Below, one piece after another: positions 249 through 52,354 of a DNA stretch of 64,000 nucleotides. The notes under the pieces are model-generated. The model searched no databases. It was not told where the DNA came from and worked only from the letters and a program-made list of their open reading frames with translations. A program made the translations under genes and the position numbers. Origin of the DNA: Trichosphaerium sp. ATCC 40318 (Eukaryota > Protista > Tubulinea); assembly GCA_038496445.1 (NCBI GenBank), contig JALMLS010000484.1:124001-188000 (forward strand), in the 5' to 3' direction. Within the stretch, counting starts at the first letter, position 1, and each line of letters opens with the position of its first letter.

Positions 249-567
249 CCTTGAATAAATACACGTAACTGACCACTACCAGCAAATTGATGCTATTATC
301 ACGTGATTGTACTTTCTTTGTTTTTCACCCTACACCTAGGAAACTGTGAGTAGGTATCACAGTTTCTGTCAATTGACCTTGCCTATTGTACATCAACCTA
401 CGTACAAGTTTTGGTCACATGATTTCTTCTTTTAGGCATTCTCTGAATAGAAGAAATCAAGTGACCGCATCCTTAATTTCGCCAGGAGCGTAAAGTACCA
501 GTAAAATTCTAAATCATTATCGAAATACCTCCTAGTAACTAAAAACGCGTAATATTGTATCAACAAG

Positions 568-1517
568 ATGGAATCCGAGACAATGAAGCAAGTTACACCG
601 TTTCGACACTCACCACCAGCAACAACAGTTTTGACGCTTAAAACAGATACATCAGTTCAAGACTTGGCACCAGAGACGTTAACACATATTTTACGCTATG
701 TAGATGTAGAAGACCTTATAACGAGTTCTACAGTATCTCACCTGTTTAATAACATCATTCGGCACAATATTGGCTTTGATGTCCTAACGTTACAAGGGCA
801 TCAGATTGTCATGTTCTAAAAGGAAGTCCGTTGCTTAAAAACACTGCAATTATGTGTTACAATATAAGATTGTCAGCAAGTAACTTGGGTTGCCTTTGTG
901 GTGTTCAAACAATAGAGTTAGTACAGTCAGGAGTGACAGATGAATGTATACTTGCAATGATGCAAGGAGGAAAACAAAAGATTCATGAAATCACGTTTCG
1001 AGGTGCAGAAATAACAGATGTCTCGTTAAAAGCACTTTCATCTGCACACACTATTCGCCTTTACCGCTGTCCCAATATTACTGTTGAAGGAATAAAAGCA
1101 CTCAAAGATGTACATCATATTTCGCTTGATGGTCCACATGATGAATGGCTTAAACACCTTAGTAACGTACACTCAATAGGTATAAGTAAAGGGGAGTTAA
1201 TAACAGATGATGGAATAAAATCACTTACAAACGCCAGACAACTTGCAATTGATTCCTGTATTGATATTACAGATAACGGTTTTAAGCACTTGGTCAATCT
1301 CAAACAACTCAGTATTTATTATGGTGCTAAAATATCAGATGAAAGTGTGAAGCACTTGGTAAATCTTGAGGAGCTTAGGGTTATTTCCGATTATTGCAAG
1401 ATAACAAAAGATTGTTTGAAAAACTTACAACACCTCAAAAAAATTCACTTCGCAGGGACAAAGCATATAACAAAAGATGATGCTGCTGAAATGGGTATTG
1501 AGTGGATGTTATTATAG
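568..1517 (+). CDS. F-box/leucine-rich-repeat protein with a frame break near 780-830
   Basis: ORF 568-819 has an F-box (DLAPETLTHILRYV); ORF 831-1517 has FBXL-type LRRs (ITDxxxKxL). The frames join with one extra nt (atgtt[t]ctaaaa gives MFLKGSPLLK) or via a weak 38-nt intron 789-826. Confidence 0.75.
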
Positions 1518-2908
1518 CCAACAATAAAAGAAACTGGTATGTCATTACCCATGGCAAGCAAGTACACATACAGTTTTGGTAACATCATCTCTGCGATGGA
1601 TAACTAGTAAAACATCTATTGATTTCTCACCCACATTGTGTTTTTTTTTTTCAGTCTACAAAACCGGATACCAAGCCAACGGCTACAAGCAAAGATTTGA
1701 AAAAAATATGAATCCTTAGGGATTTGAAATTGAAAAAACGCTATTTTGTGATAGCTCTAAGCCTGATTTTCCGGGACGGTTTGTGAACATGAGTAGCCCT
1801 TTTGCAACTCTACAAGCTATACCATGAATATATCATCATGCAGTACTTAACGTGAGCATAAGAACAGAAAGTCACGTGCATGCTACAAATTGGGAGTGAC
1901 ATTGTACAAAATAGGCTTAACCGTTTTGGTTGGACTTGTCTTTGGTAAGGTGCCTGTGGCATCACACCCACCGCTTCCAAAGGAAATTGCACTACCCCCA
2001 TTCCTTGGTTGTTGACCAAAAGCAGACAAATGCATTTAATGTCCTGGTAATTGGTTAAAATTGAAGTTAAATGAATAGCTGCATTGCACTCTTCTCTCCA
2101 TGTCTAATACATTACCAGCTGTAAACACATGTGTACGCCTTGAGTGTTGTCTCTTGGAAGGTGGACGTGCGCGTTCACTCAGTTGTAAGAAATTACACAC
2201 GTGATTTTCGACTCAAAAACGACTTCGACTTGAACCAAATTTTTTATTGTTTTGCAAAAACCGTTTTGGTAATATCTCTACTTTCAAATCCTTCGCACGT
2301 GAAGCTAGTTTTTTTTTTCAGACTTTTTTTTCGAACTGTGAGATACCATCAAATGGATGACGTTTTGTGAAGATCGGCTCATTTACCCGACGAGGACTTC
2401 TATAGACCTGACTGTAGTGAACAGTGGTCTAAATTGGCTTAGCATTCACTGTCCTATACACTGACAACGTCATCGATGTTATTTTGTTATGTATACGATA
2501 GTAACCATAAAATTTTCACGTCGTTGGCCGCTCCTGCGCTACTTTACTAATGGCGGTACGCAACAGTCACTGCTAAACGCAGAAAGACTCCTGAGTTTCA
2601 AATACTTGTGTTTGTAGTGCGATGTTGACTACAACAACGGGTGTGATTCTTCCTTTGAACCCGAATACTTCCCAACATACTGACCCATAACTCTCCCGAT
2701 ATCAAACTTCTCCAGTTTTCTACACTTTTTTCCCGTGTCGCTAGTAGACAACACCACTTAACAATTATGATGACTTAGTATTTTATCTTTATTTATCCAA
2801 TCTATAACCGCAGTACCTGCTTGGAAGGCCATCTCAGGCAAAAGCAGTACATAACCAAAAAAAACCAAAAAAAACCAAAAAAGTGTTTTAACGCAAACCA
2901 AGCCTTAT

Positions 2909-3445
2909 ATGACAACACTGGCGACTTTCACTTTAATTCTGGCACTTGTATGTTTGTCTTTCGCTCAAACTAGATTCAAAGCGCCGGTATCTACCACCCG
3001 CGCTCCGATGCCCTGTCCATCAGATTGCTACTGGAACGGCACCTTGTCTAAGTGTCTTTACGCTCCAGATGTGTTTTGTACGGGTTTTTTTCTCCTCAGA
3101 CAAAATGACAGTTTTTTCGATTTGACACTTTAAAAAGGTACTTGCAGTTCAAATGATTATGAACAATCATGTCTCAAGAGACCTGGATGTCACTATTGTA
3201 AAGAGTACATATAATATATTTGAAGTTCTTTAATGACATTGACCAACTGTAGTAACGACGGGAGCGCTTGTCAAGACTCAAGTTGTAGATTATCTTTGCT
3301 CGGACTATTACTTATAATCTCTATTTTTACCTTCATTGGTGGTATATGTATTTTGTGTATAACAATAGCAAGTATTTCATGGTGTGTATGTGCTTGTGTT
3401 TCTTGCTATAAGAAAGCGAAGGAGGAGGAATATGGCCTTGAATAA
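2909..3445 (+). CDS. Small Cys-rich type I membrane protein (3 exons)
   Basis: Signal peptide MTTLATFTLILALVCLSFA, Cys-rich ectodomain, GT-AG introns ~3078-3138 and ~3205-3252, TM helix, tail KKAKEEEYGLE. Confidence 0.8.
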
Positions 3446-3521
3446 ATACATGTCACTGATTAACAGTTCAGGTCACAATTTCATCAAATTTTTTTTGAAA
3501 TTTAATAATGGTACAACTATA

Positions 3522-3982
3522 GTGACGCTACACCGGTAGGACAAAGATCTCAGGTGCTGATCCTGATGCCACAGTTATGAGGTTTTTTTTCAAATTATTG
3601 AACTAGATCACTCTAAATGATACGAATTTTTTCCGTTTTTTTTCTATTTTTCATAGTTTGTTGATTTTTGGAATTGAGCTGTGGATTATCGACAAAAAAG
3701 ATTATCGATAATCACCTTATTCAGTTCGTTGTTACTCATAACCTGAATAATATCCATGCCTCATATTTGAAAAAATGGATGCTATCAGGTGTTACAATGT
3801 ATTTGTTGCTTATTACAATGTACTGAATGCTCATAGTGATGAGCAAATATCGGCAAAAAATGAGATTATCGATCATCTTTTTTGTCGATGATAAGGGTCA
3901 ATTCCTTTGTTTGTTATTATTTGAATTTTTTTGATTAATACTAGCGACCAGATTATAGCACCGTGATCACCGGTAGCGTGAG
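3522..3982. mobile_element. Decayed foldback/MITE-like element
   Basis: Imperfect inverted arms: gaattga..atcgacaaaaaagattatcgataatc (3671-3713) vs gattatcgatcatcttttttgtcgat..tcaattc (3863-3905); cgctacaccggt/accggtagcg near the ends. No clean TSD seen. Confidence 0.55.
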
Positions 3983-4276
3983 CGCTTTTAGTACTGACTT
4001 AATAGAAAATCCATTGGTACAGCTACAATCCTTAAGAGGGCGACTGCTCCGTTATTAACTTATGTACAAAGCTCTGGAGTCGGTTAATAGGTGGTAAAGT
4101 TCATCTTTCAAAAGGCACAAAAATTGCACGCTGAGCTTCTTGATTTGGAAATAGCCCAGTCTTACACATGCTCATGCTTGTTGCTCTAAGCTTGGGGTTA
4201 TAATTCATACGTTTAAGGGTTGTTAAGGTGTTATTAGTAACTGAAAAGGCCAATTGTGGGAACAGTAATCTAAAAC

Positions 4277-5719
4277 ATGGCAACAGACTCTATTGACGAT
4301 GTTGCTGCGAATGGAAGGTCATTACATCCTCTAATTGATTTATTTGCCGGATGTGGCGCAGTACGCTTCTATGTAGAATTTCTAGCGTAAAATAGATATA
4401 GGGCGCTTTATCTGTTGTTGTGGGTCATCCTTTGGACACTGTAAAGGTGAAATATTCAAGAAACATCTATATCTCTCCTAAATGTATTTACAGGTTCGAC
4501 AACAAAATAGTAGAGTAGCACAGACAATGTTACGTACCTTTGGTGATATTATTCGAAAAGAATCAGTACGTGCTTATTTGATCAAACACGCGCTTTCGGG
4601 AGTAATACTAACCCGTTATGCGCATTTTCGCTACTTTAGTTTGTGTACTTAGTTCCGTAACTCAAAACTAGGTTTTTGGGTTATTAAAAGGCGTAAAACC
4701 GCCTATGGTAGGCGAGGCACTCAATAATATGGTTGTTTTCGGTAGCTACGGATTCATGCAGCGGCTATTACAAAGTGACGTGTCAAAGCCACTGACACTT
4801 ACCCAAACGTGTATAGCAGGACTCGGTGTTGGTGTACGAATACTTTTTACCTCTAGTAGTTAGTTTCTACGCCTAAATTCCGAACATTACATTTCTAACA
4901 TTCTGTCACAACAGGTGCCTAGCGCAATGCTTATATGTCCTGTGGAGCATGTTAAGATTAAACTACAAATGCAGCAAGCTGAATCAAAACCTATAAGTGG
5001 AATAGCATTAATGGTATGTCAGGCAACGATGTTTTGGGGTTTTTTTGGTTTCTTTTTGAACTGCTAAATGCGGAACTTGTATTTAGTCTAATGTCTTATA
5101 GAGAGATATTATAAATAGACATGGTGTTGTACATCTATGGAAAGGTCAAGTTGTTACATGGTTACGAGATGTACCTTCTTTCGGTAAGCAATAACTGCTT
5201 GAAAAAGAAAAGAGAAGTAACATTAATTTTTTTTTCTAGGCATGTACTTTTGGTCTTATGAATTATTTAAAAGGCAACTTCAAAAATTTTCAAATAGCTC
5301 TGAGCCTTCAGCTCTAGCTATTATAGCAGCAGGATCAGCTTCAGGTTTGTAGTTGTTTTTAAGAGAGAAAAAAATAAGAATGTGAAGAGAAGGAAAATAC
5401 TAAGTATCTTTAGGTGTTGCATCATGGTTCTTAACATATCCTTTCGATGTAGTTAAAACACGGATACAAACTGCAGAAAAACCAGAGGGTTTAATTAAAA
5501 CTATGTCAGGCATTTATAAAAATGTACGTAACACGTGACTTTCAAAGAAAGAAAGCAACATTGATAAGTTTTTTAACTAATTTGGTTTAGGGTGGTTTGA
5601 AGAAATTATACGCAGGTGTGACACCTTGTTTGTTGCGGTCCATACCAACAAATGCAACTGTTTTTTTGGCTTATGAATTATTGGTTAAAGCAGGAAATTT
5701 CACATACTCAGCCTTCTAA
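4277..5719 (+). CDS. Mitochondrial carrier (SLC25), carnitine/acylcarnitine or ornithine carrier-like; multi-exon
   Basis: Three Px[DE]xxK signatures after splicing (GHPLDTVK|VR, CPVEHVKIKLQ, YPFDVVKTRIQ), plus RDVPSFG and RSIPTNA. Not in the ORF track because the exons are short. Confidence 0.9.
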
Positions 5720-20871: not shown

Positions 20872-22170
20872 CTAATGTATTTCCTTACGTCCCCTCTTGT
20901 ACTCCCCTTCCTGTTTACCCAAAACAAATTTGCCCTGCAGACACAATTTCCCATTCTTATCCCAGTTTTTGTGTATTCCATCTCGTTTATCGTTGATGTA
21001 ATTGCACTGTTCACACAACTTGCCATTGCTATGCCATATCTTGTACTCTCCTTCTTTTTTACCATTGATACTATTGAACTGCTCCTCAACTTGGCCGTTT
21101 TTGTACCATGTGTTGTACATCCCGTGTTGTATGCCATTGACATACTGAACACACTTCTTCAATTGGCCATTGTAATACCACTCATTGAACTCTCCTTCTT
21201 TTTTATTTTTGACATATTTGCACTGTTCACATAATTGACCATTGCTGTACCACCTCTTGAACTCTCCTTCGTTTTGGCCATTGATATAATTAAACTCATT
21301 CCTCACTTGGCCATTATTATGCCAGGTTTTGTGCTCTCCATGTAGTGTACCGTTTGTGTAAGTGCACTTTAAAAGCAATTGGCCAGATTCAAGCCACTCC
21401 ATAAACTCTCCATCTTTGACACCACTATTGTAACAATATTGGTATTGTAATTGACCATTGCTGTACCAACGTTTGCACTCACCATGTTGTTTCCCATTTA
21501 TGTAATATTCTTTCTTTACTTGACCATCGCTGTACCAATACTTGCACTCACCATGTTGTTTCCCATTAACGTAATTATCATGTTGCCTTAATTCGCCATT
21601 GCTGTACCAATGCTTGCACTCACCATGTCGTTTCCCATTAACATAATTATCACGTTGCTTCAATTGGCCATTTTTAAACCACATGATGTACTTTCCATCT
21701 CGCTTACCATCAACATAATGGCACTGCTCATTTAATTGGCCATTGTCATGCCAAGCTCTATATTCCCCAATTTGTATACCATTTACATAATTGCGGTGAT
21801 CATATAACTGACCATTGTAATACCAACGCTTGCACTCTCCATGTTTTTTCCCATTGAGAAAACTAAAATGCCGTTTCATTTGGCCATTCTTATCCCATTT
21901 CTTGTACTCATGTTGAACACCATGGTTCCAATACACCTCACAAAAAAGCCTGTTATTTATTCTTCTTTGCCATTTTCCATGCTTTTTCATCTCCCCATCA
22001 AACCTGAGCGTCATTGCCGTCTGTTTAGATAGTAATGGCCAAATACAATTTATTTCCCGGGATAGGTCCAAATCGATAATATCAAGCTGAATCTCAACTG
22101 GGAGGCTCAATAGATGGCAGTCATCCGATTTTACACTGCGCTGCTCTTTATTCCTTTGTATACGCTCCAT
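20872..22170 (-). CDS. Intronless protein: F-box-like N-terminus plus ~14 MORN-variant (YwqK-like) repeats
   Basis: LLSLPVEIQLDII followed by 24-aa repeats GExKxWYxNGQLxxxxxYxNG. Confidence 0.88.
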   Translation of the reverse strand: MERIQRNKEQRSVKSDDCHLLSLPVEIQLDIIDLDLSREINCIWPLLSKQTAMTLRFDGEMKKHGKWQRRINNRLFCEVYWNHGVQHEYKKWDKNGQMKRHFSFLNGKKHGECKRWYYNGQLYDHRNYVNGIQIGEYRAWHDNGQLNEQCHYVDGKRDGKYIMWFKNGQLKQRDNYVNGKRHGECKHWYSNGELRQHDNYVNGKQHGECKYWYSDGQVKKEYYINGKQHGECKRWYSNGQLQYQYCYNSGVKDGEFMEWLESGQLLLKCTYTNGTLHGEHKTWHNNGQVRNEFNYINGQNEGEFKRWYSNGQLCEQCKYVKNKKEGEFNEWYYNGQLKKCVQYVNGIQHGMYNTWYKNGQVEEQFNSINGKKEGEYKIWHSNGKLCEQCNYINDKRDGIHKNWDKNGKLCLQGKFVLGKQEGEYKRGRKEIH

Positions 22171-23805: not shown

Positions 23806-26514
23806 TTAATTGGTAATACATAGTTTTACAATTGTTTTAAATGTCTTTCTATTTACTCTAGCCAAAGCATCACGAATAGTTTGTAACTCAGGATTCTTGA
23901 ATAAACACAATAGTATTGGCTTTACTTTTGGCTCCTAAAAATATATATTAACACGTGTATGCTACTAAAATAACTTGCTACAAAAAGGACAGTACCAGTT
24001 TTTTTTTCTTGATAAGAGAAAAATATGTTCTCATGTCTTTTGCATCCTTAACCTTTTCCCATTCGTTCTCTAGGTACTGTATAATATTCTCATACTTCTC
24101 TTCTGCGGATTTAATATCTGTTTCAAGGTGTGGGAGATGATACAAGCACTCTTCAACATGATTAAGTCGTATGATATTAAGTAACGAATCCAAGCTGAAT
24201 TTTTTAGCAGAAACGTTGAATGGTGTATCACAAACAAAACCAATAGAATATTTTATAGCAATATATCCTTTGTTATATCTCTTGAAAACAGTTTTATGTT
24301 GTGTAATAGCATAGCCAGCCTATAAGACAACAGGAGTTAAAGTTTGAACCAAAATGAGAAAAAAACAAGAAATTAACATCTTCTCATCTACGAGTCTAAT
24401 GCACTCACAATTGGTCCAAAAGGATTCAATTCATCTATGGCTTGTTCTAAAGTTTCATCATTGTAAATATGGCAAGCTTCTTTAGGAGGCTCTCCACAGC
24501 AAAACTAACCAATAGTTAACACATTCGAATATGAAGTGAAAGAAACTACAAACCTCCTCTTCAACACTTTGTAATGTGTCAACATTAAAAGTTTTCATGT
24601 GAATTATAGTATCTCGGTTACACCTACCAACCTTTCTAAACGATTGTGACATCAACACTAGGCTATAGCACCTAAAGAAGAAACATGAGTTATGATGTAA
24701 GAAAAAGTTAAGAAAAAGCGTACAAGTTTGTTTCAGTTGGAAGAGTGAACTCGTTCTCCTTCCAAATACGCCAAAATAATTCAGCAAATGTAGTCTTGAC
24801 TACCTTACCATCAAAAGGCCGTGTACAGACACCCTCTGAAGCATCAGGAAGTCCTATACACACACCACTTAAGCAACTTTACTTAATAGCCTTTTTCACT
24901 TACTTTCTGAAGCAACACGCCATTCACCTTTATAGTGATACAAGGAACAAACATGCCCATCATATATCGGTGTAACAACACTTGGTACATTCCAATCGAT
25001 ATCACCTGTACCTTTAACATAGCTACCAGAATAACATTTGACATTTTGCTCGAAAGCATCAACATCCAAAACAAGAGGACCTTGAGATGGAGCAAGTGCA
25101 GCACTATGAGGTTATAAGTACTAGCCAAATATTTATAGCAATACGATTCATAATATTGGTTACCTGTTAGGCGTATAAGCATTCGCAGAAAGCTGTATCA
25201 AAGGTTCAAAATCGTTATGACTTGCTACAGTAAGTTTATACTTTTTTTGTATAGACAAACTGTTATTTTTAAGACACTGAAGAATTATGTCTTCGTGATT
25301 GCTACCATCAATGTCCTTGGACGTCAAATTACCTAACCTAACGCGAGCTATTGACCAAGCATTGAAGTCAAGTTCATCATGGATATAGAAAGTATTGAAA
25401 CTTCCAGACTTCTTAAACTTTGTCAACGATTCTTGCCATAGAGGTTTGTAAAACTTTTGAAATTCTGGCCATGTTTGTGCGTCAATCTCTTGAATTTCTA
25501 TAAAAGATACTGGCGTCAGTATATTGAAACCATAGTATAGAATAAGTACGTACTGTCCCAATAAGGTTTGAGGTTAACGTTGTAAATAGTGCCCTAAGAA
25601 AAATATGAGAATCCTAAACACAACCCGAATGTTTAAGTTTTTGGAGGTACAGGATACGAACCTTTTCCACTAATTGTCTAGCAAACTCCAAATATCTTAT
25701 TGCGATAAGTACAAGCTACAATTATCATGACATAAGATAATGAAAGAATGGAAGGAAGGAAGGTACTTTTTGAGCTTTGAAAATCTTTCCTTCTCTAATC
25801 CGTTCTCGTGCCAAATTAAATCGTTGATTTGCTGACCAAATTGTAGTGCTAGTTAATTTTAGGTCTATGGTAACAATAGAAACATCATACCTTTTTAGAA
25901 CGTCTATATCTAAGTAATTCTCGCAAGGCAAATCACGTTTTTTGTACACAATCTAAACATGAAATTAGTGCGCGAAAAACCCAAAAACTGTTTTCAACTG
26001 CTACAGTCTGATAGTTGCTTCTTACGTATTTTTTTGGATAATGCATCATCTCTAGTAATGCCATGCGATGCTCTAATAACTATCTTTTATAAATAATTGA
26101 TCAACAAGCGACAGAAAGCAATCAAAACAAAAAAAACACAAAAAAGACAAGTTTTTGTTGAATTGTCAATGTAACGTACATACGACTCTAACTCTTCCTC
26201 TGTATAAAATATAACGTCTATATCTTGCTCAGAGCCTTTATACTCAAGCATATTATCTGCCGCTTCATCGTAAGCGTTTTTTATTTGATGAGTAGTTATT
26301 GCTATGTAGTCCCAGTCAGAATCATCTCTATGCGTTCCGTGTACTCTACGGATATTATTAGCCAGTTTTATAGATTTTATGGTTCCACATGCCTACTTCC
26401 TTGTAAAAAGACTGCCAGTAGGTATTTAGTTATCTTCGGATGAAATTTACGCGTTAACAGAGAGAGTAGATCGTCTTTGTCATGGACGCCATCAGCGTTT
26501 AAACGAAGAGCCAT
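23806..26514 (-). CDS. Pol-beta-family nucleotidyltransferase + helical domain + degenerate T4 Rnl1-like RNA ligase domain (multi-exon; start uncertain)
   Basis: Spliced translation gives AVFLQGSRVHGTHRDDSDWDYIAI...QDIDVIFY (GS/DxD/D triad), IRYLEFARQLVEKGTIYN, then QGPLVLD...IDWN..VVTPIYDGHVCSLYHYKGEWRVASERLPDAS...FAELFWRIW...LNPFGPIAGYAI. Confidence 0.8.
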
Positions 26515-26882
26515 TAATGGCGTTGTAGAGAAGTAGACAGTTCTAGATACAACTTAACACGCAATAAGCCAAAAATAAACTGCAGCACAATTAAAATTAT
26601 GTCAAAAACACAAGTTTTTAAATTCGATGAATTGTTAACAATTTTCGCTGCATTGTACTTGAAGTAACATTCAAAGCTTTAGTAGCTTCATTACGAGTAA
26701 GTTAAGTTTGCTTTATTAATAAGTACAAGTCTATTATTGTGACAATTAGCTTCATGAGCTAATAATAAAATTATGACAACCTAAATGAAGATATGCGCTC
26801 ACCAGCAACATATTGGAACTGACTCAGATTAGCGATAGTTTTTGCTATTGATAATTTTTTTTCCACATAACGCTGAAGGCAT

Positions 26883-50100: not shown

Positions 50101-52354
50101 GAAGGTAGTTCAATGCAGCAACCAACTCTATTGGAGACATTTCCATATTGGGCTTATCTTTTATCAAGTCTAGGACCGTACGTCTATTACCAGTATATCA
50201 GCAATAGCACGGTTTTAAATCAAGCTTACATTGATATGATGTTTCCCTTTAGGGTATCCTTGTTTGTGCTTGTATTCTCAAGTGCCTTCTTTACAGTTGT
50301 ATATATTGTGGGTACTTTTGGGTATTGGGATCTCAAGTACTTGGCTTGACGCTCTAAAATCTTGGCAAGAGCGCTAGTTCCTAGTCAATCAAATCAGGAG
50401 AAATAACAAAGTATATAAAGGTACCCTCTAAGCATAAGTACTGTACTAATGACGATCCTATAGGAATCAAGGCTTGTCTATTGGACTTGATTTCTCCTAG
50501 AAAGATATCCAGTTTGGATCCAAATACAATCACCGAGTATAGCTTTGGATCTTGGTCATGTAGTATCTTACTTAAAACACTACACCAATATTGAAGGTGT
50601 TCCTGCTGCTCTTTGATTGATGTTGACAAGTCAATCTAAAAAGTTGATGAATGAAAAAGCAAACAAACATGACGTAGATGTCAATAGGAACTTACAACAA
50701 TGATATAAATAACAAGTTGCTTTGCTGCAAAGTACTGATGTAACCCTTTGTATTCTATCTGTCCAGCAAAGTCTAACACTGTGAATGATACACCATTGAA
50801 CCTAAAGCACATTAAATGTAAGGTAGACATAGTTTAAACGTACAACACATGCGAGGTATCAAAGCCGATTGTTGAGTCACATGTTTTATTTGTTTCCTTT
50901 GCCAATGTCCTCACTAGTGTTGTCTTACCTAATACATATATTTAGCAAACACAATTGACTTATAAATACCTGATCCTTCGTGGCCCACAACCATTATTTT
51001 GGCTTCCAATTGCTTTTTTATATTGTACTTTGAACGATTTACTCCATGAATAACTTGATGTGATACAGCATTTTCTTTGGCCTTGAGGCCATAGCAATAG
51101 ATATTTTTGAACTGTTGTATTTTTTTATCTGATAATGTATCCATATGTAAGGTTATCACACGTGCCCCTTTAAATTCACGTGCCATAGTTGTGACTATAA
51201 AGTGTTACAACAAAAGTAGAAAATCTTAAATGTTAGTTTAAGAGCAACGTACCATCGTGAAGTGATACCTCAGGATCTTTTTTACAAAGGTCATAGATAA
51301 ATACAATATCACAAGAACAGCCAGAAGAACATTTATCTTGATGCTCCTTAATATACTGTTTCATATCAGCATAAGCGCTTTTAGAATAAAATTCAAAAAA
51401 CTGTGAGTCAAGACAATAAAAAGGTACAAACATAGTATCTAGTATCTCGGGGCAACAAATCAATTTTCTAAGGTTGCTATGATTAGATTGCTCTTCAGAA
51501 CACACTTTCCCTAATATATATTCTTCGGTAGTGTCATCGATAGAGCAAGAGAATATTTTATCCACATTGTTAGAAAAGGCAACTTGATCTGGCTTTCCAG
51601 CAATACTTTTCTGGGTTTTACTACCTCCATCTAACTTCCCATCTTCTAAAACCCCACCAATGTATTTACGACCATCTGGCCAGTACTTTGCGCCAATACC
51701 ATTGGGAACACGGTTATGGAACTCTCCAATGTACTTGGTACCATCTTGATAATAGTAAACTCCAATGGACTTGTAAGGGCGCTCCTTAAATTGGCCTTTG
51801 TACTCGAGAGTTCCATCTTCCCTATATGTCTCTCCAACACCATCAAATTCCCTGCGTTTAAATTGACCTTTATACCTCAATGTACCATTCTTCCTATACA
51901 ACTTGCCAGTACACAACTTATCATCCTCAAAAGTACCAATATATTTGGTCCCATCTTCGTAATACAACTCACCTTCACCATGAAACTTAAACTCTCGAAA
52001 TTGGCCTTTGTATTGCAGCTTACCGTTCGGGTAAAACAACTCAGAAGTAAACTTACCACTATCAAATTGACCTTTGTAGCACAGACCATTCGACCAATGT
52101 ATGCCTCCATGAGTCTTTTTAGTGCTTGGCCATTGTTTACGGCCACCAGGACAATCGTCATGAAATGTGCGAATATGTAGTGTAAGTGTGCCTGTGCCAT
52201 GGAACAGATCATTCTCAAACTGACCTTCGTATGTCATGGAAATACCTCTTTTAAGAGTTCCAGTGCCATGATACTTGCCGCCCTCAACTTGACCTGTATA
52301 CACAGTATCACCTCTACGAATCTCCTCCATACCATTCAACACTTGTAAGTACAT
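47151..52354 (-). CDS. MORN repeats - Roc GTPase - COR - PARP-like ADP-ribosyltransferase - receiver-like domain protein
   Basis: MORN (YxGxFxxxxxxGxG); KIMVVGHEGSG|KTT, STIGFD, LDFAGQIEY, GSKLD; YLHSVG (COR); LHGT..GYYG|DGIYFT..GYDSH..NEIIVF..QILPRYLVYY; LILWVDDN. Confidence 0.85.

Follow-up and report, generated by a model that had tools for sequence, protein, structure and literature searches.

A spliced Trichosphaerium gene joins an RlaP-type nucleotidyltransferase to a lysine-less relic of an Rnl1-type RNA ligase

The DNA analysed here is a 64,000-nucleotide stretch of the Trichosphaerium sp. ATCC 40318 genome (contig JALMLS010000484.1, positions 124,001 to 188,000), referred to below as the window. 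On its minus strand lies one intron-rich gene of 14 exons and 13 introns, which runs from an ATG at 26514 to a TAA stop codon at 23808-23806 and has an open reading frame of 636 codons. The exon chain was rebuilt from sequence and then corrected by the junctions of a cDNA contig, and the resulting frame exactly reproduces the gene bounds (23806-26514) that an earlier sequence-only reading had proposed. RNA coverage of the gene consists of this one contig of 1669 nt (run X1, run type unrecorded), which is spliced, matches the window at 100% identity and reaches from 26581 to 24158, where it ends inside exon 12. It confirms 12 canonical introns, including a GC-AG intron within the nucleotidyltransferase (NTase) motif. 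Both halves of the gene are covered by this single contig, rather than each half having a transcript of its own. Beyond 26581 the 5′ end of the contig carries 19 unmatched letters, which we take to be the reverse complement of the SMART template-switch oligo; on that assumption the contig represents cDNA and the capped mRNA would start near 26581, with a 5′ UTR at 26515-26581.

Exon 1 (26393-26514) opens with the ATG and closes with the G-S codons of the NTase hG[GS] motif plus two further nucleotides, at a cDNA junction of 26393/26345. Intron 1 (26346-26392, 47 nt) thereby splits the GS/R of the motif; the cDNA joint places its GC..AG ends (CT..GC on the plus strand), and alternative GT donors would disrupt the reading frame. 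Exon 2 (26180-26345), placed by profile matches and cDNA junctions, contains the catalytic core of an RlaP-type NTase. Exons 3 (26079-26026), 4a (25952-25891), 4b (25848-25767), 5 (25715-25662) and 6 (25593-25554) presumably encode the helical domain of the NTase. All of them are delimited by cDNA junctions, across which the reading frame is consistent, and the cDNA also places an additional 42-nt intron (25890-25849) between exons 4a and 4b. Exon 7 (25164-25497), again with cDNA junctions, would hold the end of the NTase half together with a linker or, possibly, the N-terminal subdomain of a ligase relic.

The ligase half follows. Exon 8 (24904-25103) contains the Rnl1 motif I block (25006-24908), located by profile, BLASTP and hhalign, and exon 9 (24724-24853) the segment after motif I (PDAS...F.ELFW..W), located by BLASTP and tblastn. 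Exons 10 (24671-24554) and 11 (24504-24409), both delimited by cDNA junctions, occupy the expected site of motifs III/IIIa. Exon 12 (23996-24319) has AGY at its start and then, according to profiles, the initial half of the C-terminal domain specific to Rnl1 (24202-24026), with RNA only down to 24158. Exon 13 (23806-23934), which includes the stop codon, lies beyond RNA coverage and is placed by a canonical GT..AG intron of 61 nt and the open frame.

Residues ~1-235 appear to form a Pol-beta nucleotidyltransferase of the RlaP/T4 NrdC.11 family, which is apparently active, judging by its intact catalytic residues. Exon 2 matches phrog_388, the family to which T4 NrdC.11 belongs (2e-135), with an E value of 6.9e-4. 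Under an HMM of 16 phage RlaP sequences exon 2 comes first among 2757 six-frame window segments with 14.3 bits, the runner-up scoring 4.1 bits. The hG[GS] motif, the [DE]x[DE] pair and the third carboxylate of Pol-beta NTases are all present, the GS junction being confirmed by cDNA. SDWD (Asp codons 26317-26315 and 26311-26309) and DIDV (third Asp, 26218-26216) both lie within exon 2 and line up with the RlaP profile at SDtD and vDleiy, so that the intact signature with a third Asp claimed from sequence alone is borne out. Exon 2 also has weak matches to a generic Polbeta model (PF18765, E 0.073) and to the MntA antitoxin (E 0.018). No Pfam model, including PF10127 for RlaP, rose above threshold on single exons of the gene. 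Exons 3-7, of 13-110 residues each, likewise gave no significant profile match, and the helical domain is assigned by position and pattern, so that a complete RlaP is partly deduced from spacing.

Comparison with ligase profiles indicates that residues ~340-636 descend from an ATP-dependent RNA ligase of the Rnl1 type (T4 RnlA family, PF09511). The decisive signal arose only once a divergent clade, found via the L008 ligase, had entered the profile. With a 106-sequence Rnl1 HMM exon 8 then reaches 16.6 bits (E 2.7e-6) and heads all window segments; BLASTP aligns it to the relative P0196 with an E value of 5e-9, and hhalign gives 82% probability (E 1.1e-5). P0196 itself belongs to PF09511 (46.9 bits), and its matches to the T4 Rnl1 structures 2c5u and 5tt6 have E values of ~1e-8. 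Exon 9 matches P0203 by BLASTP (E 4e-7) over a segment common to the P0196/P0203 subclade, and the tblastn matches of exons 8 and 9 are colinear, with sum-statistics of 3.5e-5 and 9.8e-6. Exon 12 scores 16.4 bits against the HMM of clade gB2 (E 2.5e-6, rank 1 in the window). Its residues 40-98 match the start of the Rnl1-specific all-helical C-domain with 16.4-18.1 bits (18.1 with the sub-profile, rank 1), and hhalign gives a P of 6.8e-4. Exons 8 (16.6 bits) and 12 (9.6-16.4 bits) are thus the top two window segments for Rnl1 profiles, the next scoring 3.6-4.4 bits. The reading frame remains open over 221 codons and four further canonical, correctly phased introns (P ~2.5e-6), in keeping with the earlier remark that it remains open despite motif decay.

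The description of this half as full-length Rnl1-like stands in part. Significant similarity covers the block around motif I, the stretch that follows and the first half of the C-domain; exon-level searches detect neither the N-terminal subdomain nor motifs III-V, so that the full length is partly deduced from spacing. Exon 7 gave no signal against sub-profiles of the Rnl1 N-terminus (RG and EKFFN elements), and the length of the region, ~100 residues, fits; in exon 13 similarity to the second half of the C-domain is not significant.

Motif I reads P-I-Y-D-G, with an isoleucine codon (ATA, 24967-24965) at the site of the adenylylated lysine and no lysine in the 15 residues upstream. Among the 21 aligned relatives all keep the K, D, G, E, E-G and K-x-K residues of the ligase motifs, K95, D97 and G98 of the K-x-D-G motif being invariant. 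The loss of the motif I lysine, read as IYDG from the sequence alone, is therefore upheld by alignment and by inspection of the codon, and the cDNA letters at this point are identical to the window. For motifs III, IV and V profile windows show no similarity on exons 10-12. By position and spacing only, the motif III Glu would be replaced by Val, motif IV EG[FY] by AGY and motif V K-x-K by K-x-Tyr; exons 11-12 contain no E-G dipeptide at all. Motif I seems to have kept its D-G, and motif V its first Lys. The AGY and the eroded motif V of the sequence-only reading thus fit by position and spacing, but the profile windows lend them no signal. The pattern is best explained by a ligase half that is predicted to be unable to adenylylate itself, its motif I lysine having become isoleucine and motifs III, IV and V having decayed.

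Several broader searches gave nothing for these exons. Exon-wise scans with Pfam, NCBIfam and PHROGs found no match for the ligase half, phmmer searches of the PDB with exons 12, 8 and 2 returned noise only, and pairwise Smith-Waterman alignments of all exons with T4 Rnl1 and T4 NrdC.11 did not rise above shuffles. ESM Atlas look-alikes of exons 7 and 12 all scored <=0.82 and pointed to no family, whilst AlphaFold2 models of the single exons 12 and 7 (pLDDT 50 and 44) were unusable. No protein homologue was found with exon 7, and viral and metagenome contigs yielded no loci related to exon 12, 8 or 7; an orthologue of the fusion gene was found by neither route. The nine proteins that exon 7 did retrieve with phmmer from 1.84 billion sequences are repeat proteins in which one LRR-like stretch (residues 51-99) matched repeatedly, and they were read as chance. 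A profile of 118 T4-like Rnl1 sequences gave no signal. A score of 5.8 bits on exon 8, obtained with an Rnl1 profile to which 13 diverse phage and MAG sequences had been added, was discounted, as controls show that exon matches of 5-6 bits can be spurious: an amphipathic helix in exon 12 reaches 5.8 bits with an RlaP profile, and the segment 51204-50932, which is unrelated, 11.5 bits. Because of these spurious scores, exon matches from narrow profiles were not relied on. Two proteins considered as ligase-NTase fusions (P0182/P0186, 621-631 aa) proved to be Rnl1 proteins that have a helical extension at the C-terminus but lack an NTase.

RlaP owes its name to its gene-neighbourhood association with RNA ligases. 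The Trichosphaerium NTase has the catalytic core of hG[GS], S-D-x-D and a third Asp in common with RlaP (PF10127; T4 NrdC.11, Pseudomonas PfRlaP/PaRlaP), although its helical domain is too diverged for confirmation exon by exon. Elsewhere RlaP is a stand-alone operon neighbour, whereas here it is fused covalently to a ligase relic within a eukaryotic gene with 13 introns. The enzyme adds one or two NMPs to RNA 3′-OH ends, damaged RNA being preferred (bioRxiv 10.64898/2025.12.29.696909), and its distribution follows that of RNA ligases in jumbo phages (PMC7824862). The ligase half is closest to a divergent bacterial and phage clade of Rnl1 (P0183-P0206), above all P0196 and P0203. With the T4 Rnl1 family (PF09511; 2C5U, 5TT6), and especially with this clade, it has in common the motif I block (…DG..C.L.HY.GEW.VA…), the PDAS…F..LFW segment and the start of the C-domain, in colinear order, and the spacing of the motifs by position is 69/67/12 residues as against 60/68/13 in T4 Rnl1. 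Unlike Rnl1, it has Lys replaced by Ile, motifs III-V and the N-terminal EKFFN subdomain are unrecognisable, and ~340 residues of NTase and linker lie upstream.

One phage-like contig, L024, carries RlaP (PF10127), YAcAr, PNKP and Rnl1 in a row, the last of these (P0192) being a relative of the ligase half. The presence of a member of the wider ligase group in such a cassette suggests that the Trichosphaerium gene fuses two RNA-repair partners. Together with published work (bioRxiv 10.64898/2025.12.29.696909; PMC7824862), it also supports the premise of the earlier reading that RlaP-type NTases accompany RNA ligases. The RlaP-PNKP-Rnl1 cassette, which follows the same logic as pseT/rnlA/nrdC.11 in T4, brings the same two families together as separate active enzymes, whereas here they form one polypeptide in which the ligase is predicted to be dead; no PNKP gene was seen beside the fusion gene in the window. 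Among protists, Naegleria gruberi likewise has RNA ligases of phage and bacterial type (seven Rnl1, five Rnl2, one Rnl5 and two RtcB; PMC4408790), which are presumed to be active. Neither an RlaP fusion nor a lysine-less member is described in that study or in the RlaP papers (bioRxiv 10.64898/2025.12.29.696909, PMC7824862).

The architecture deduced from sequence alone, an RlaP-type NTase followed by a lysine-less Rnl1-derived region, is thus supported by profiles and encoded on one cDNA-backed transcript. The fusion of an Rnl1 relic without its catalytic lysine to RlaP suggests that the ligase now only recognises broken RNA for a live enzyme, and it is plausible that the dead ligase is a module that presents RNA ends to the NTase. 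The preferred reading, to which we give a probability of about 0.55, is that of one expressed eukaryotic gene for a 636-residue protein in which the relic of an Rnl1 ligase would act as the RNA recogniser of an RlaP enzyme, the whole having arisen by fusion of a cassette. Two neighbours of a phage or bacterial RNA-repair cassette were probably fused after transfer into the protist, after which introns would have been gained and the ligase chemistry lost. T4 Rnl1 owes its preference for tRNA broken in the anticodon loop to its C-terminal domain. The relic, which has kept both the C-terminal domain specific to Rnl1 and the strand block that surrounds motif I, may bind broken stem-loop RNA, for example cleaved tRNA, as a substrate-recognition module. 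It would then pass the 3′-OH end to the fused RlaP domain, which would add one or two nucleotides, as bacterial RlaP does, and sealing would be left to a separate active ligase. A more specific form of this model, in which a silent phage ligase reads cleaved anticodon loops within a single-chain enzyme and RlaP rebuilds the missing nucleotide or nucleotides before the separate ligase seals, is put forward more tentatively.

The cDNA contig itself raises a different possibility. Within exon 9 it omits 37 nt (24808-24772, joint 24770->24808), which shifts the frame to a stop early in exon 10, and the assembled form would encode ~405 residues that end just after motif I. As this contig is the only one assembled, and as motifs III-V are undetectable, the functional product could be an NTase with a linker of this length, translated from the skipped mRNA, exons 10-13 being irrelevant and the ligase half decaying baggage. 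This is unlikely, however, as the downstream frame is open over its 221 codons and four correctly phased canonical introns, the skip-bearing contig still splices downstream introns, and exon 12, which lies beyond the skip, is still significantly similar to the C-domain of Rnl1. The omitted 37 nt, moreover, encode residues conserved in P0196/P0203, and the non-canonical ends of the skip (GT..TG at best) with 3-nt microhomology are what would be predicted for an artefact of reverse transcription or assembly, or for a minor isoform that yields no product.

The substrate of the NTase might also lie outside RNA repair. NTases of the MNT/MntA type modify substrates such as proteins, small molecules or nucleotide signals, and a minimal NTase of this kind could be accompanied by the ligase relic as a regulatory or nucleotide-sensing domain. 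The weak PF18765 and MntA matches of exon 2 would agree with this, as would the lack of a significant profile match for the RlaP-defining helical domain. The best and only significant family matches, however, are to RlaP/NrdC.11 profiles, and both the fusion to an Rnl1 relic and the cassette around P0192 point to RNA ends as the substrate, which leaves this reading improbable, if slightly less so than the last. Less probable still is a ligase half that continues to seal by bypassing lysine adenylylation, for instance with the NTase adenylylating the RNA 5′-phosphate and the relic performing the final phosphodiester step. Lysine-less mutants of classic ligases can indeed seal pre-adenylylated ends, and the D-G of motif I and the first motif V Lys appear to survive. 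The earlier idea that the NTase supplies the nucleotidylation step is nevertheless unlikely: the later steps need residues of motifs III, IV and V, which by position also appear to have been replaced (Val, Ala and Tyr), in regions that lack any profile similarity. Moreover, RlaP is known to act on 3′-OH ends and not on 5′-phosphates (bioRxiv 10.64898/2025.12.29.696909).

If the more specific form of the model, with a silent ligase that reads cleaved anticodon loops for RlaP, is true, the gene would demonstrate in nature that RlaP acts on the very substrate of the ligase, and its ligase half would be the first pseudo-ligase to serve as an RNA-targeting domain. That the substrate-facing parts were kept and the chemistry lost in the fusion suggests that RlaP and the ligase act on the same RNA molecule. 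RlaP biochemistry comes only from a late-2025 preprint (bioRxiv 10.64898/2025.12.29.696909), and the fusion bears on how the enzyme finds its substrate and cooperates with ligases. It also offers a ready-made construct for the question of whether the body and C-domain of Rnl1 confer recognition of tRNA breaks, and documents one more instance in which a covalent nucleotidyltransferase has given rise to a pseudo-enzyme. Among amoeboid protists, Naegleria at least has an unusually rich complement of RNA ligases (PMC4408790), and the Trichosphaerium gene would illustrate how parts of phage RNA repair may be domesticated, acquire introns and be rewired in such organisms.

The gene on the minus strand between the ATG at 26514 and the TAA at 23806 lies in DNA that is eukaryotic, as judged from its G+C content of about 37% and its short spliceosomal introns. 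The exon chain was built from three-frame translation and the phasing of splice sites, and RNA evidence was taken from a public sequencing run (X1), whose type is unrecorded and which is stored as Logan contigs. A single contig from this run, 1669 nt long and identical to the window, maps as 14 pieces with 13 skips between them, 12 of which are canonical introns of 42–100 nt. The 19 loose letters at the contig end correspond, in reverse complement, to the SMART template-switching oligo, and hence the contig is read as cDNA with an mRNA start near 26581, 67 nt upstream of the ATG. The cDNA junctions place exon 3 at 26079–26026, a 42-nt intron at 25890–25849 and the start of exon 7 at 25497, all on the minus strand, and with them the open reading frame comprises 636 codons. 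Coverage stops at 24158 within exon 12 (24319–23996), and exon 13 (23934–23806) has no RNA cover. The GC–AG intron that the sequence-only reading had placed within the nucleotidyltransferase motif is seen as a 47-nt skip (intron 1, 26392–26346, minus strand). The same spliced contig spans both the nucleotidyltransferase and the ligase-derived halves, which are thus on one transcript, and the objection that they might be transcribed separately falls.

The nucleotidyltransferase motif is split by this intron, with exon 1 (26514–26393) ending in G-S and exon 2 (26345–26180) starting with R-V-H-G-T-H-R-D-D-S-D-W-D, followed further on by D-I-D-V. Exon 2 alone matches phrog_388, labelled ‘nucleotidyltransferase’ (E 6.9e-4, profile positions 48–96), with weaker matches to generic Polbeta and MntA. 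T4 NrdC.11 is a member of phrog_388 (2e-135) and is assigned to the RlaP family, PF10127, in bioRxiv 10.64898/2025.12.29.696909. Against a profile of 16 phage RlaP proteins, taken from annotated phage records and the contig L024, exon 2 scores 14.3 bits (E 1.3e-5 among 14 exon peptides), and its segment ranks first of the 2757 six-frame stop-to-stop segments of the window, the runner-up reaching 4.1 bits. In the alignment, S-D-W-D coincides with S-D-x-D of the family, and the third catalytic Asp is matched by the second Asp of D-I-D-V. From this rank and these residues the core is RlaP-like and looks catalytically complete, so that the Pol-beta signature and third Asp proposed earlier both find a place at RlaP catalytic positions, with the G-S junction present in the cDNA. 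In RlaP the core is followed by a helical domain, as the same preprint describes. Among the split exons of 13–27 residues no significant match to this domain was found; from length and pattern only, one may be present here.

For the C-terminal half, single exons gave no ligase match in Pfam, NCBIfam or PHROGs, and no ligase signal came from comparison of its exons with PDB sequences, from pairwise alignment to T4 Rnl1, or from a profile built on 118 T4-like Rnl1 proteins. When diverse phage Rnl1 were added to the profile, exon 8 (25103–24904) reached 5.8 bits at motif I, a level that controls showed can be spurious on exons. Among the sequences compared, motif I was matched best by a gammaproteobacterial MAG ligase (L008; PF09511, 49.5 bits), which as a query yielded 77 divergent Rnl1-family proteins that were then added to the profile. 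The enlarged profile gives exon 8 a score of 16.6 bits (E 2.7e-6, positions 86–117) and exon 12 one of 9.6 bits (positions 254–315), and in a six-frame scan of the window these exons rank first and second (17.1 and 10.0 bits; next 4.4). When only the most distant subgroup (P0183–P0206) is profiled, exon 12 reaches 16.4 bits and exon 8 12.6, again the top two ranks (next 3.6), and sub-profiles of the motif I window and of the first C-domain half each give the top rank, at 18.9–23.2 and 18.1 bits. By BLASTP, exon 8 is 48% identical to the relative P0196 over 31 residues (E 5e-9) and exon 9 (24853–24724) is 41% identical to P0203 over 37 (E 4e-7), whilst hhalign with a 21-sequence alignment returns a probability of 82% for exon 8 (E 1.1e-5) and P 6.8e-4 for exon 12. 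With P0196 and P0203 as tblastn queries against the whole window, the best matches are exons 8 and 9 together (sum E 3.5e-5 and 9.8e-6) and exon 12, in an order colinear with the proteins. P0196 itself is an ordinary PF09511 protein, at 46.9 bits with a cut-off of 28.3, and it matches the solved T4 Rnl1 structures 2c5u, 5tt6 and 9do4 (E about 1e-8). The agreement of these comparisons shows that the C-terminal half descends from the Rnl1 family, and similarity to the helical C-domain specific to Rnl1 takes this beyond generic ligase resemblance. Single-exon structure models (n=2) were unusable. Elsewhere in the window, a segment at 50932–51204 (minus strand) reaches 11.5–14.6 bits when compared with the C-domain portion of profiles built from T4-like Rnl1; this is probably chance, as the match is lost with a broader Rnl1 profile.

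The ligase chemistry appears to have been lost. Across 21 aligned relatives, K95, D97, G98, E159, E226, G227, K239 and K241 (P0196 numbering) are invariant. Motif I reads T-P-I-Y-D-G here against the consensus E-K-L-D-G, within a statistically supported alignment; the Ile at the lysine position is encoded by ATA (24967–24965), the cDNA letters are identical there, and the 15 residues upstream contain no other lysine. The loss of the lysine codon noted from the genome is therefore borne out in RNA. The full-length Rnl1-like region described previously holds for the motif I block, exon 9 and the start of the C-domain, whereas motifs III, IV and V have no profile similarity. By position and spacing only, motif III would be Val, motif IV Ala-Gly and motif V Lys-x-Tyr, which is as far as the earlier AGY and eroded motif V can be followed; the I–III, III–IV and IV–V spacings are 69, 67 and 12 residues, compared with 60, 68 and 13 in T4 Rnl1, and there is no Glu-Gly anywhere in exons 11 (24504–24409) and 12. 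Since loss of the motif I lysine by itself abolishes adenylylation in classic ligases (PMC4408790), the domain is filed as a putative Rnl1-derived pseudo-enzyme, outside the enzyme family proper.

The closest ligase relatives are found on compact, prokaryote- or phage-like contigs. On L024 the gene order is NT5C, HAD, RlaP (PF10127), YAcAr, a PNKP-type kinase-phosphatase and the Rnl1 P0192, and on L028 PNKP immediately precedes the ligase. This is a T4-style healing-and-sealing set plus RlaP, in line with the comparative literature (PMC7824862). Whereas RlaP and Rnl1 are separate genes in the L024 cassette, the protist gene thus fuses these two partners of one repair cassette. The L024 gene row (341–5166) lies on a phage-like contig, with DUF1643 after P0192 and then peptide deformylase, ThyX and dUTPase. 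On L023 the second gene downstream of P0203, past a 102-residue ORF, encodes a 538-residue protein (1856–3472) that joins an N-terminal MobA-like NTP-transferase part to an APH-type kinase domain and is possibly another end-healing partner. Two further Rnl1-family ligases, P0182 (631 residues) and P0186 (621), are extended at the C-terminus by about 370 residues that look helical by eye and have neither a Pfam match nor a nucleotidyltransferase motif. Orthologue searches with exon 7 (25497–25164) in protein libraries, and with exons 7, 8 and 12 in viral and metagenome contigs, found none. Residues about 51–99 of exon 7 (25200–25345, minus strand) match nine long repeat proteins 4–12 times each (best E 2.5e-11, full-library phmmer); the stretch resembles a single leucine-rich-repeat-like unit, and the matches are taken as chance inflated by repeats. 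Neighbours in the window are a MORN-repeat protein, a small basic ORF and, farther away, S-adenosylmethionine decarboxylase, none with an obvious RNA-repair link. The MORN-like ORF (20872–22170, minus strand) is unbroken, encodes 432 residues that are almost all repeats (Y.NG...GE...W..NGQL) and sits about 1.6 kb downstream of the 3' end of the gene.

The thirteenth skip in the cDNA contig, of 37 nt (24808–24772, minus strand), lies inside exon 9, has ends that are GT..TG at best with a microhomology of 3 nt, and shifts the frame to a stop early in exon 10 (24671–24554), giving a product of about 405 residues. It is known from the sole cDNA contig, and contigs carry no isoform proportions. A gene that makes a truncated, nucleotidyltransferase-only product while its 3' exons decay would account for such a skip, but the unskipped frame is open for 221 more codons with introns correctly phased, an event with a chance of about 2.5e-6 at the window stop density of 0.057 per codon, and exon 12, 3' of the skip, retains significant family similarity. 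As, in addition, the 37 nt code for amino acids that relatives conserve (F.ELFW) and the next three introns are correctly spliced in the same contig, the skip is taken for a reverse-transcription artefact or a minor unproductive isoform; an assembly artefact or a regulated unproductive isoform could also give rise to it.

The architecture of an intact RlaP-type core and a lysine-less Rnl1-derived half on one mRNA is given a probability of about 0.85. The ligase-derived half keeps the strand block around motif I and the beginning of the C-domain. T4 Rnl1 favours breaks in the tRNA anticodon loop, a preference to which its C-domain contributes. According to bioRxiv 10.64898/2025.12.29.696909, damaged RNA gains one or two nucleotides at its 3'-OH through the action of RlaP, which also contributes to the functional recovery of over-trimmed tRNA. 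The relic may thus bind broken stem-loop RNA and position its 3' end for extension by the fused nucleotidyltransferase, after which an active ligase encoded elsewhere would seal the break; this sequence of events is put forward tentatively, at slightly less than even odds. Besides the truncated, nucleotidyltransferase-only product, its competitors are that the nucleotidyltransferase acts on a non-RNA substrate, or that the ligase-derived half has a sealing activity without need for the lysine. No RlaP–Rnl1 fusion or lysine-less Rnl1 is described in the available text of the literature on RlaP with RNA ligases or of the Naegleria ligase paper (PMC4408790), and no literature joining pseudoenzymes, RNA ligases and RNA repair was found. 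Both parts belong to known families whose partnership is already known.
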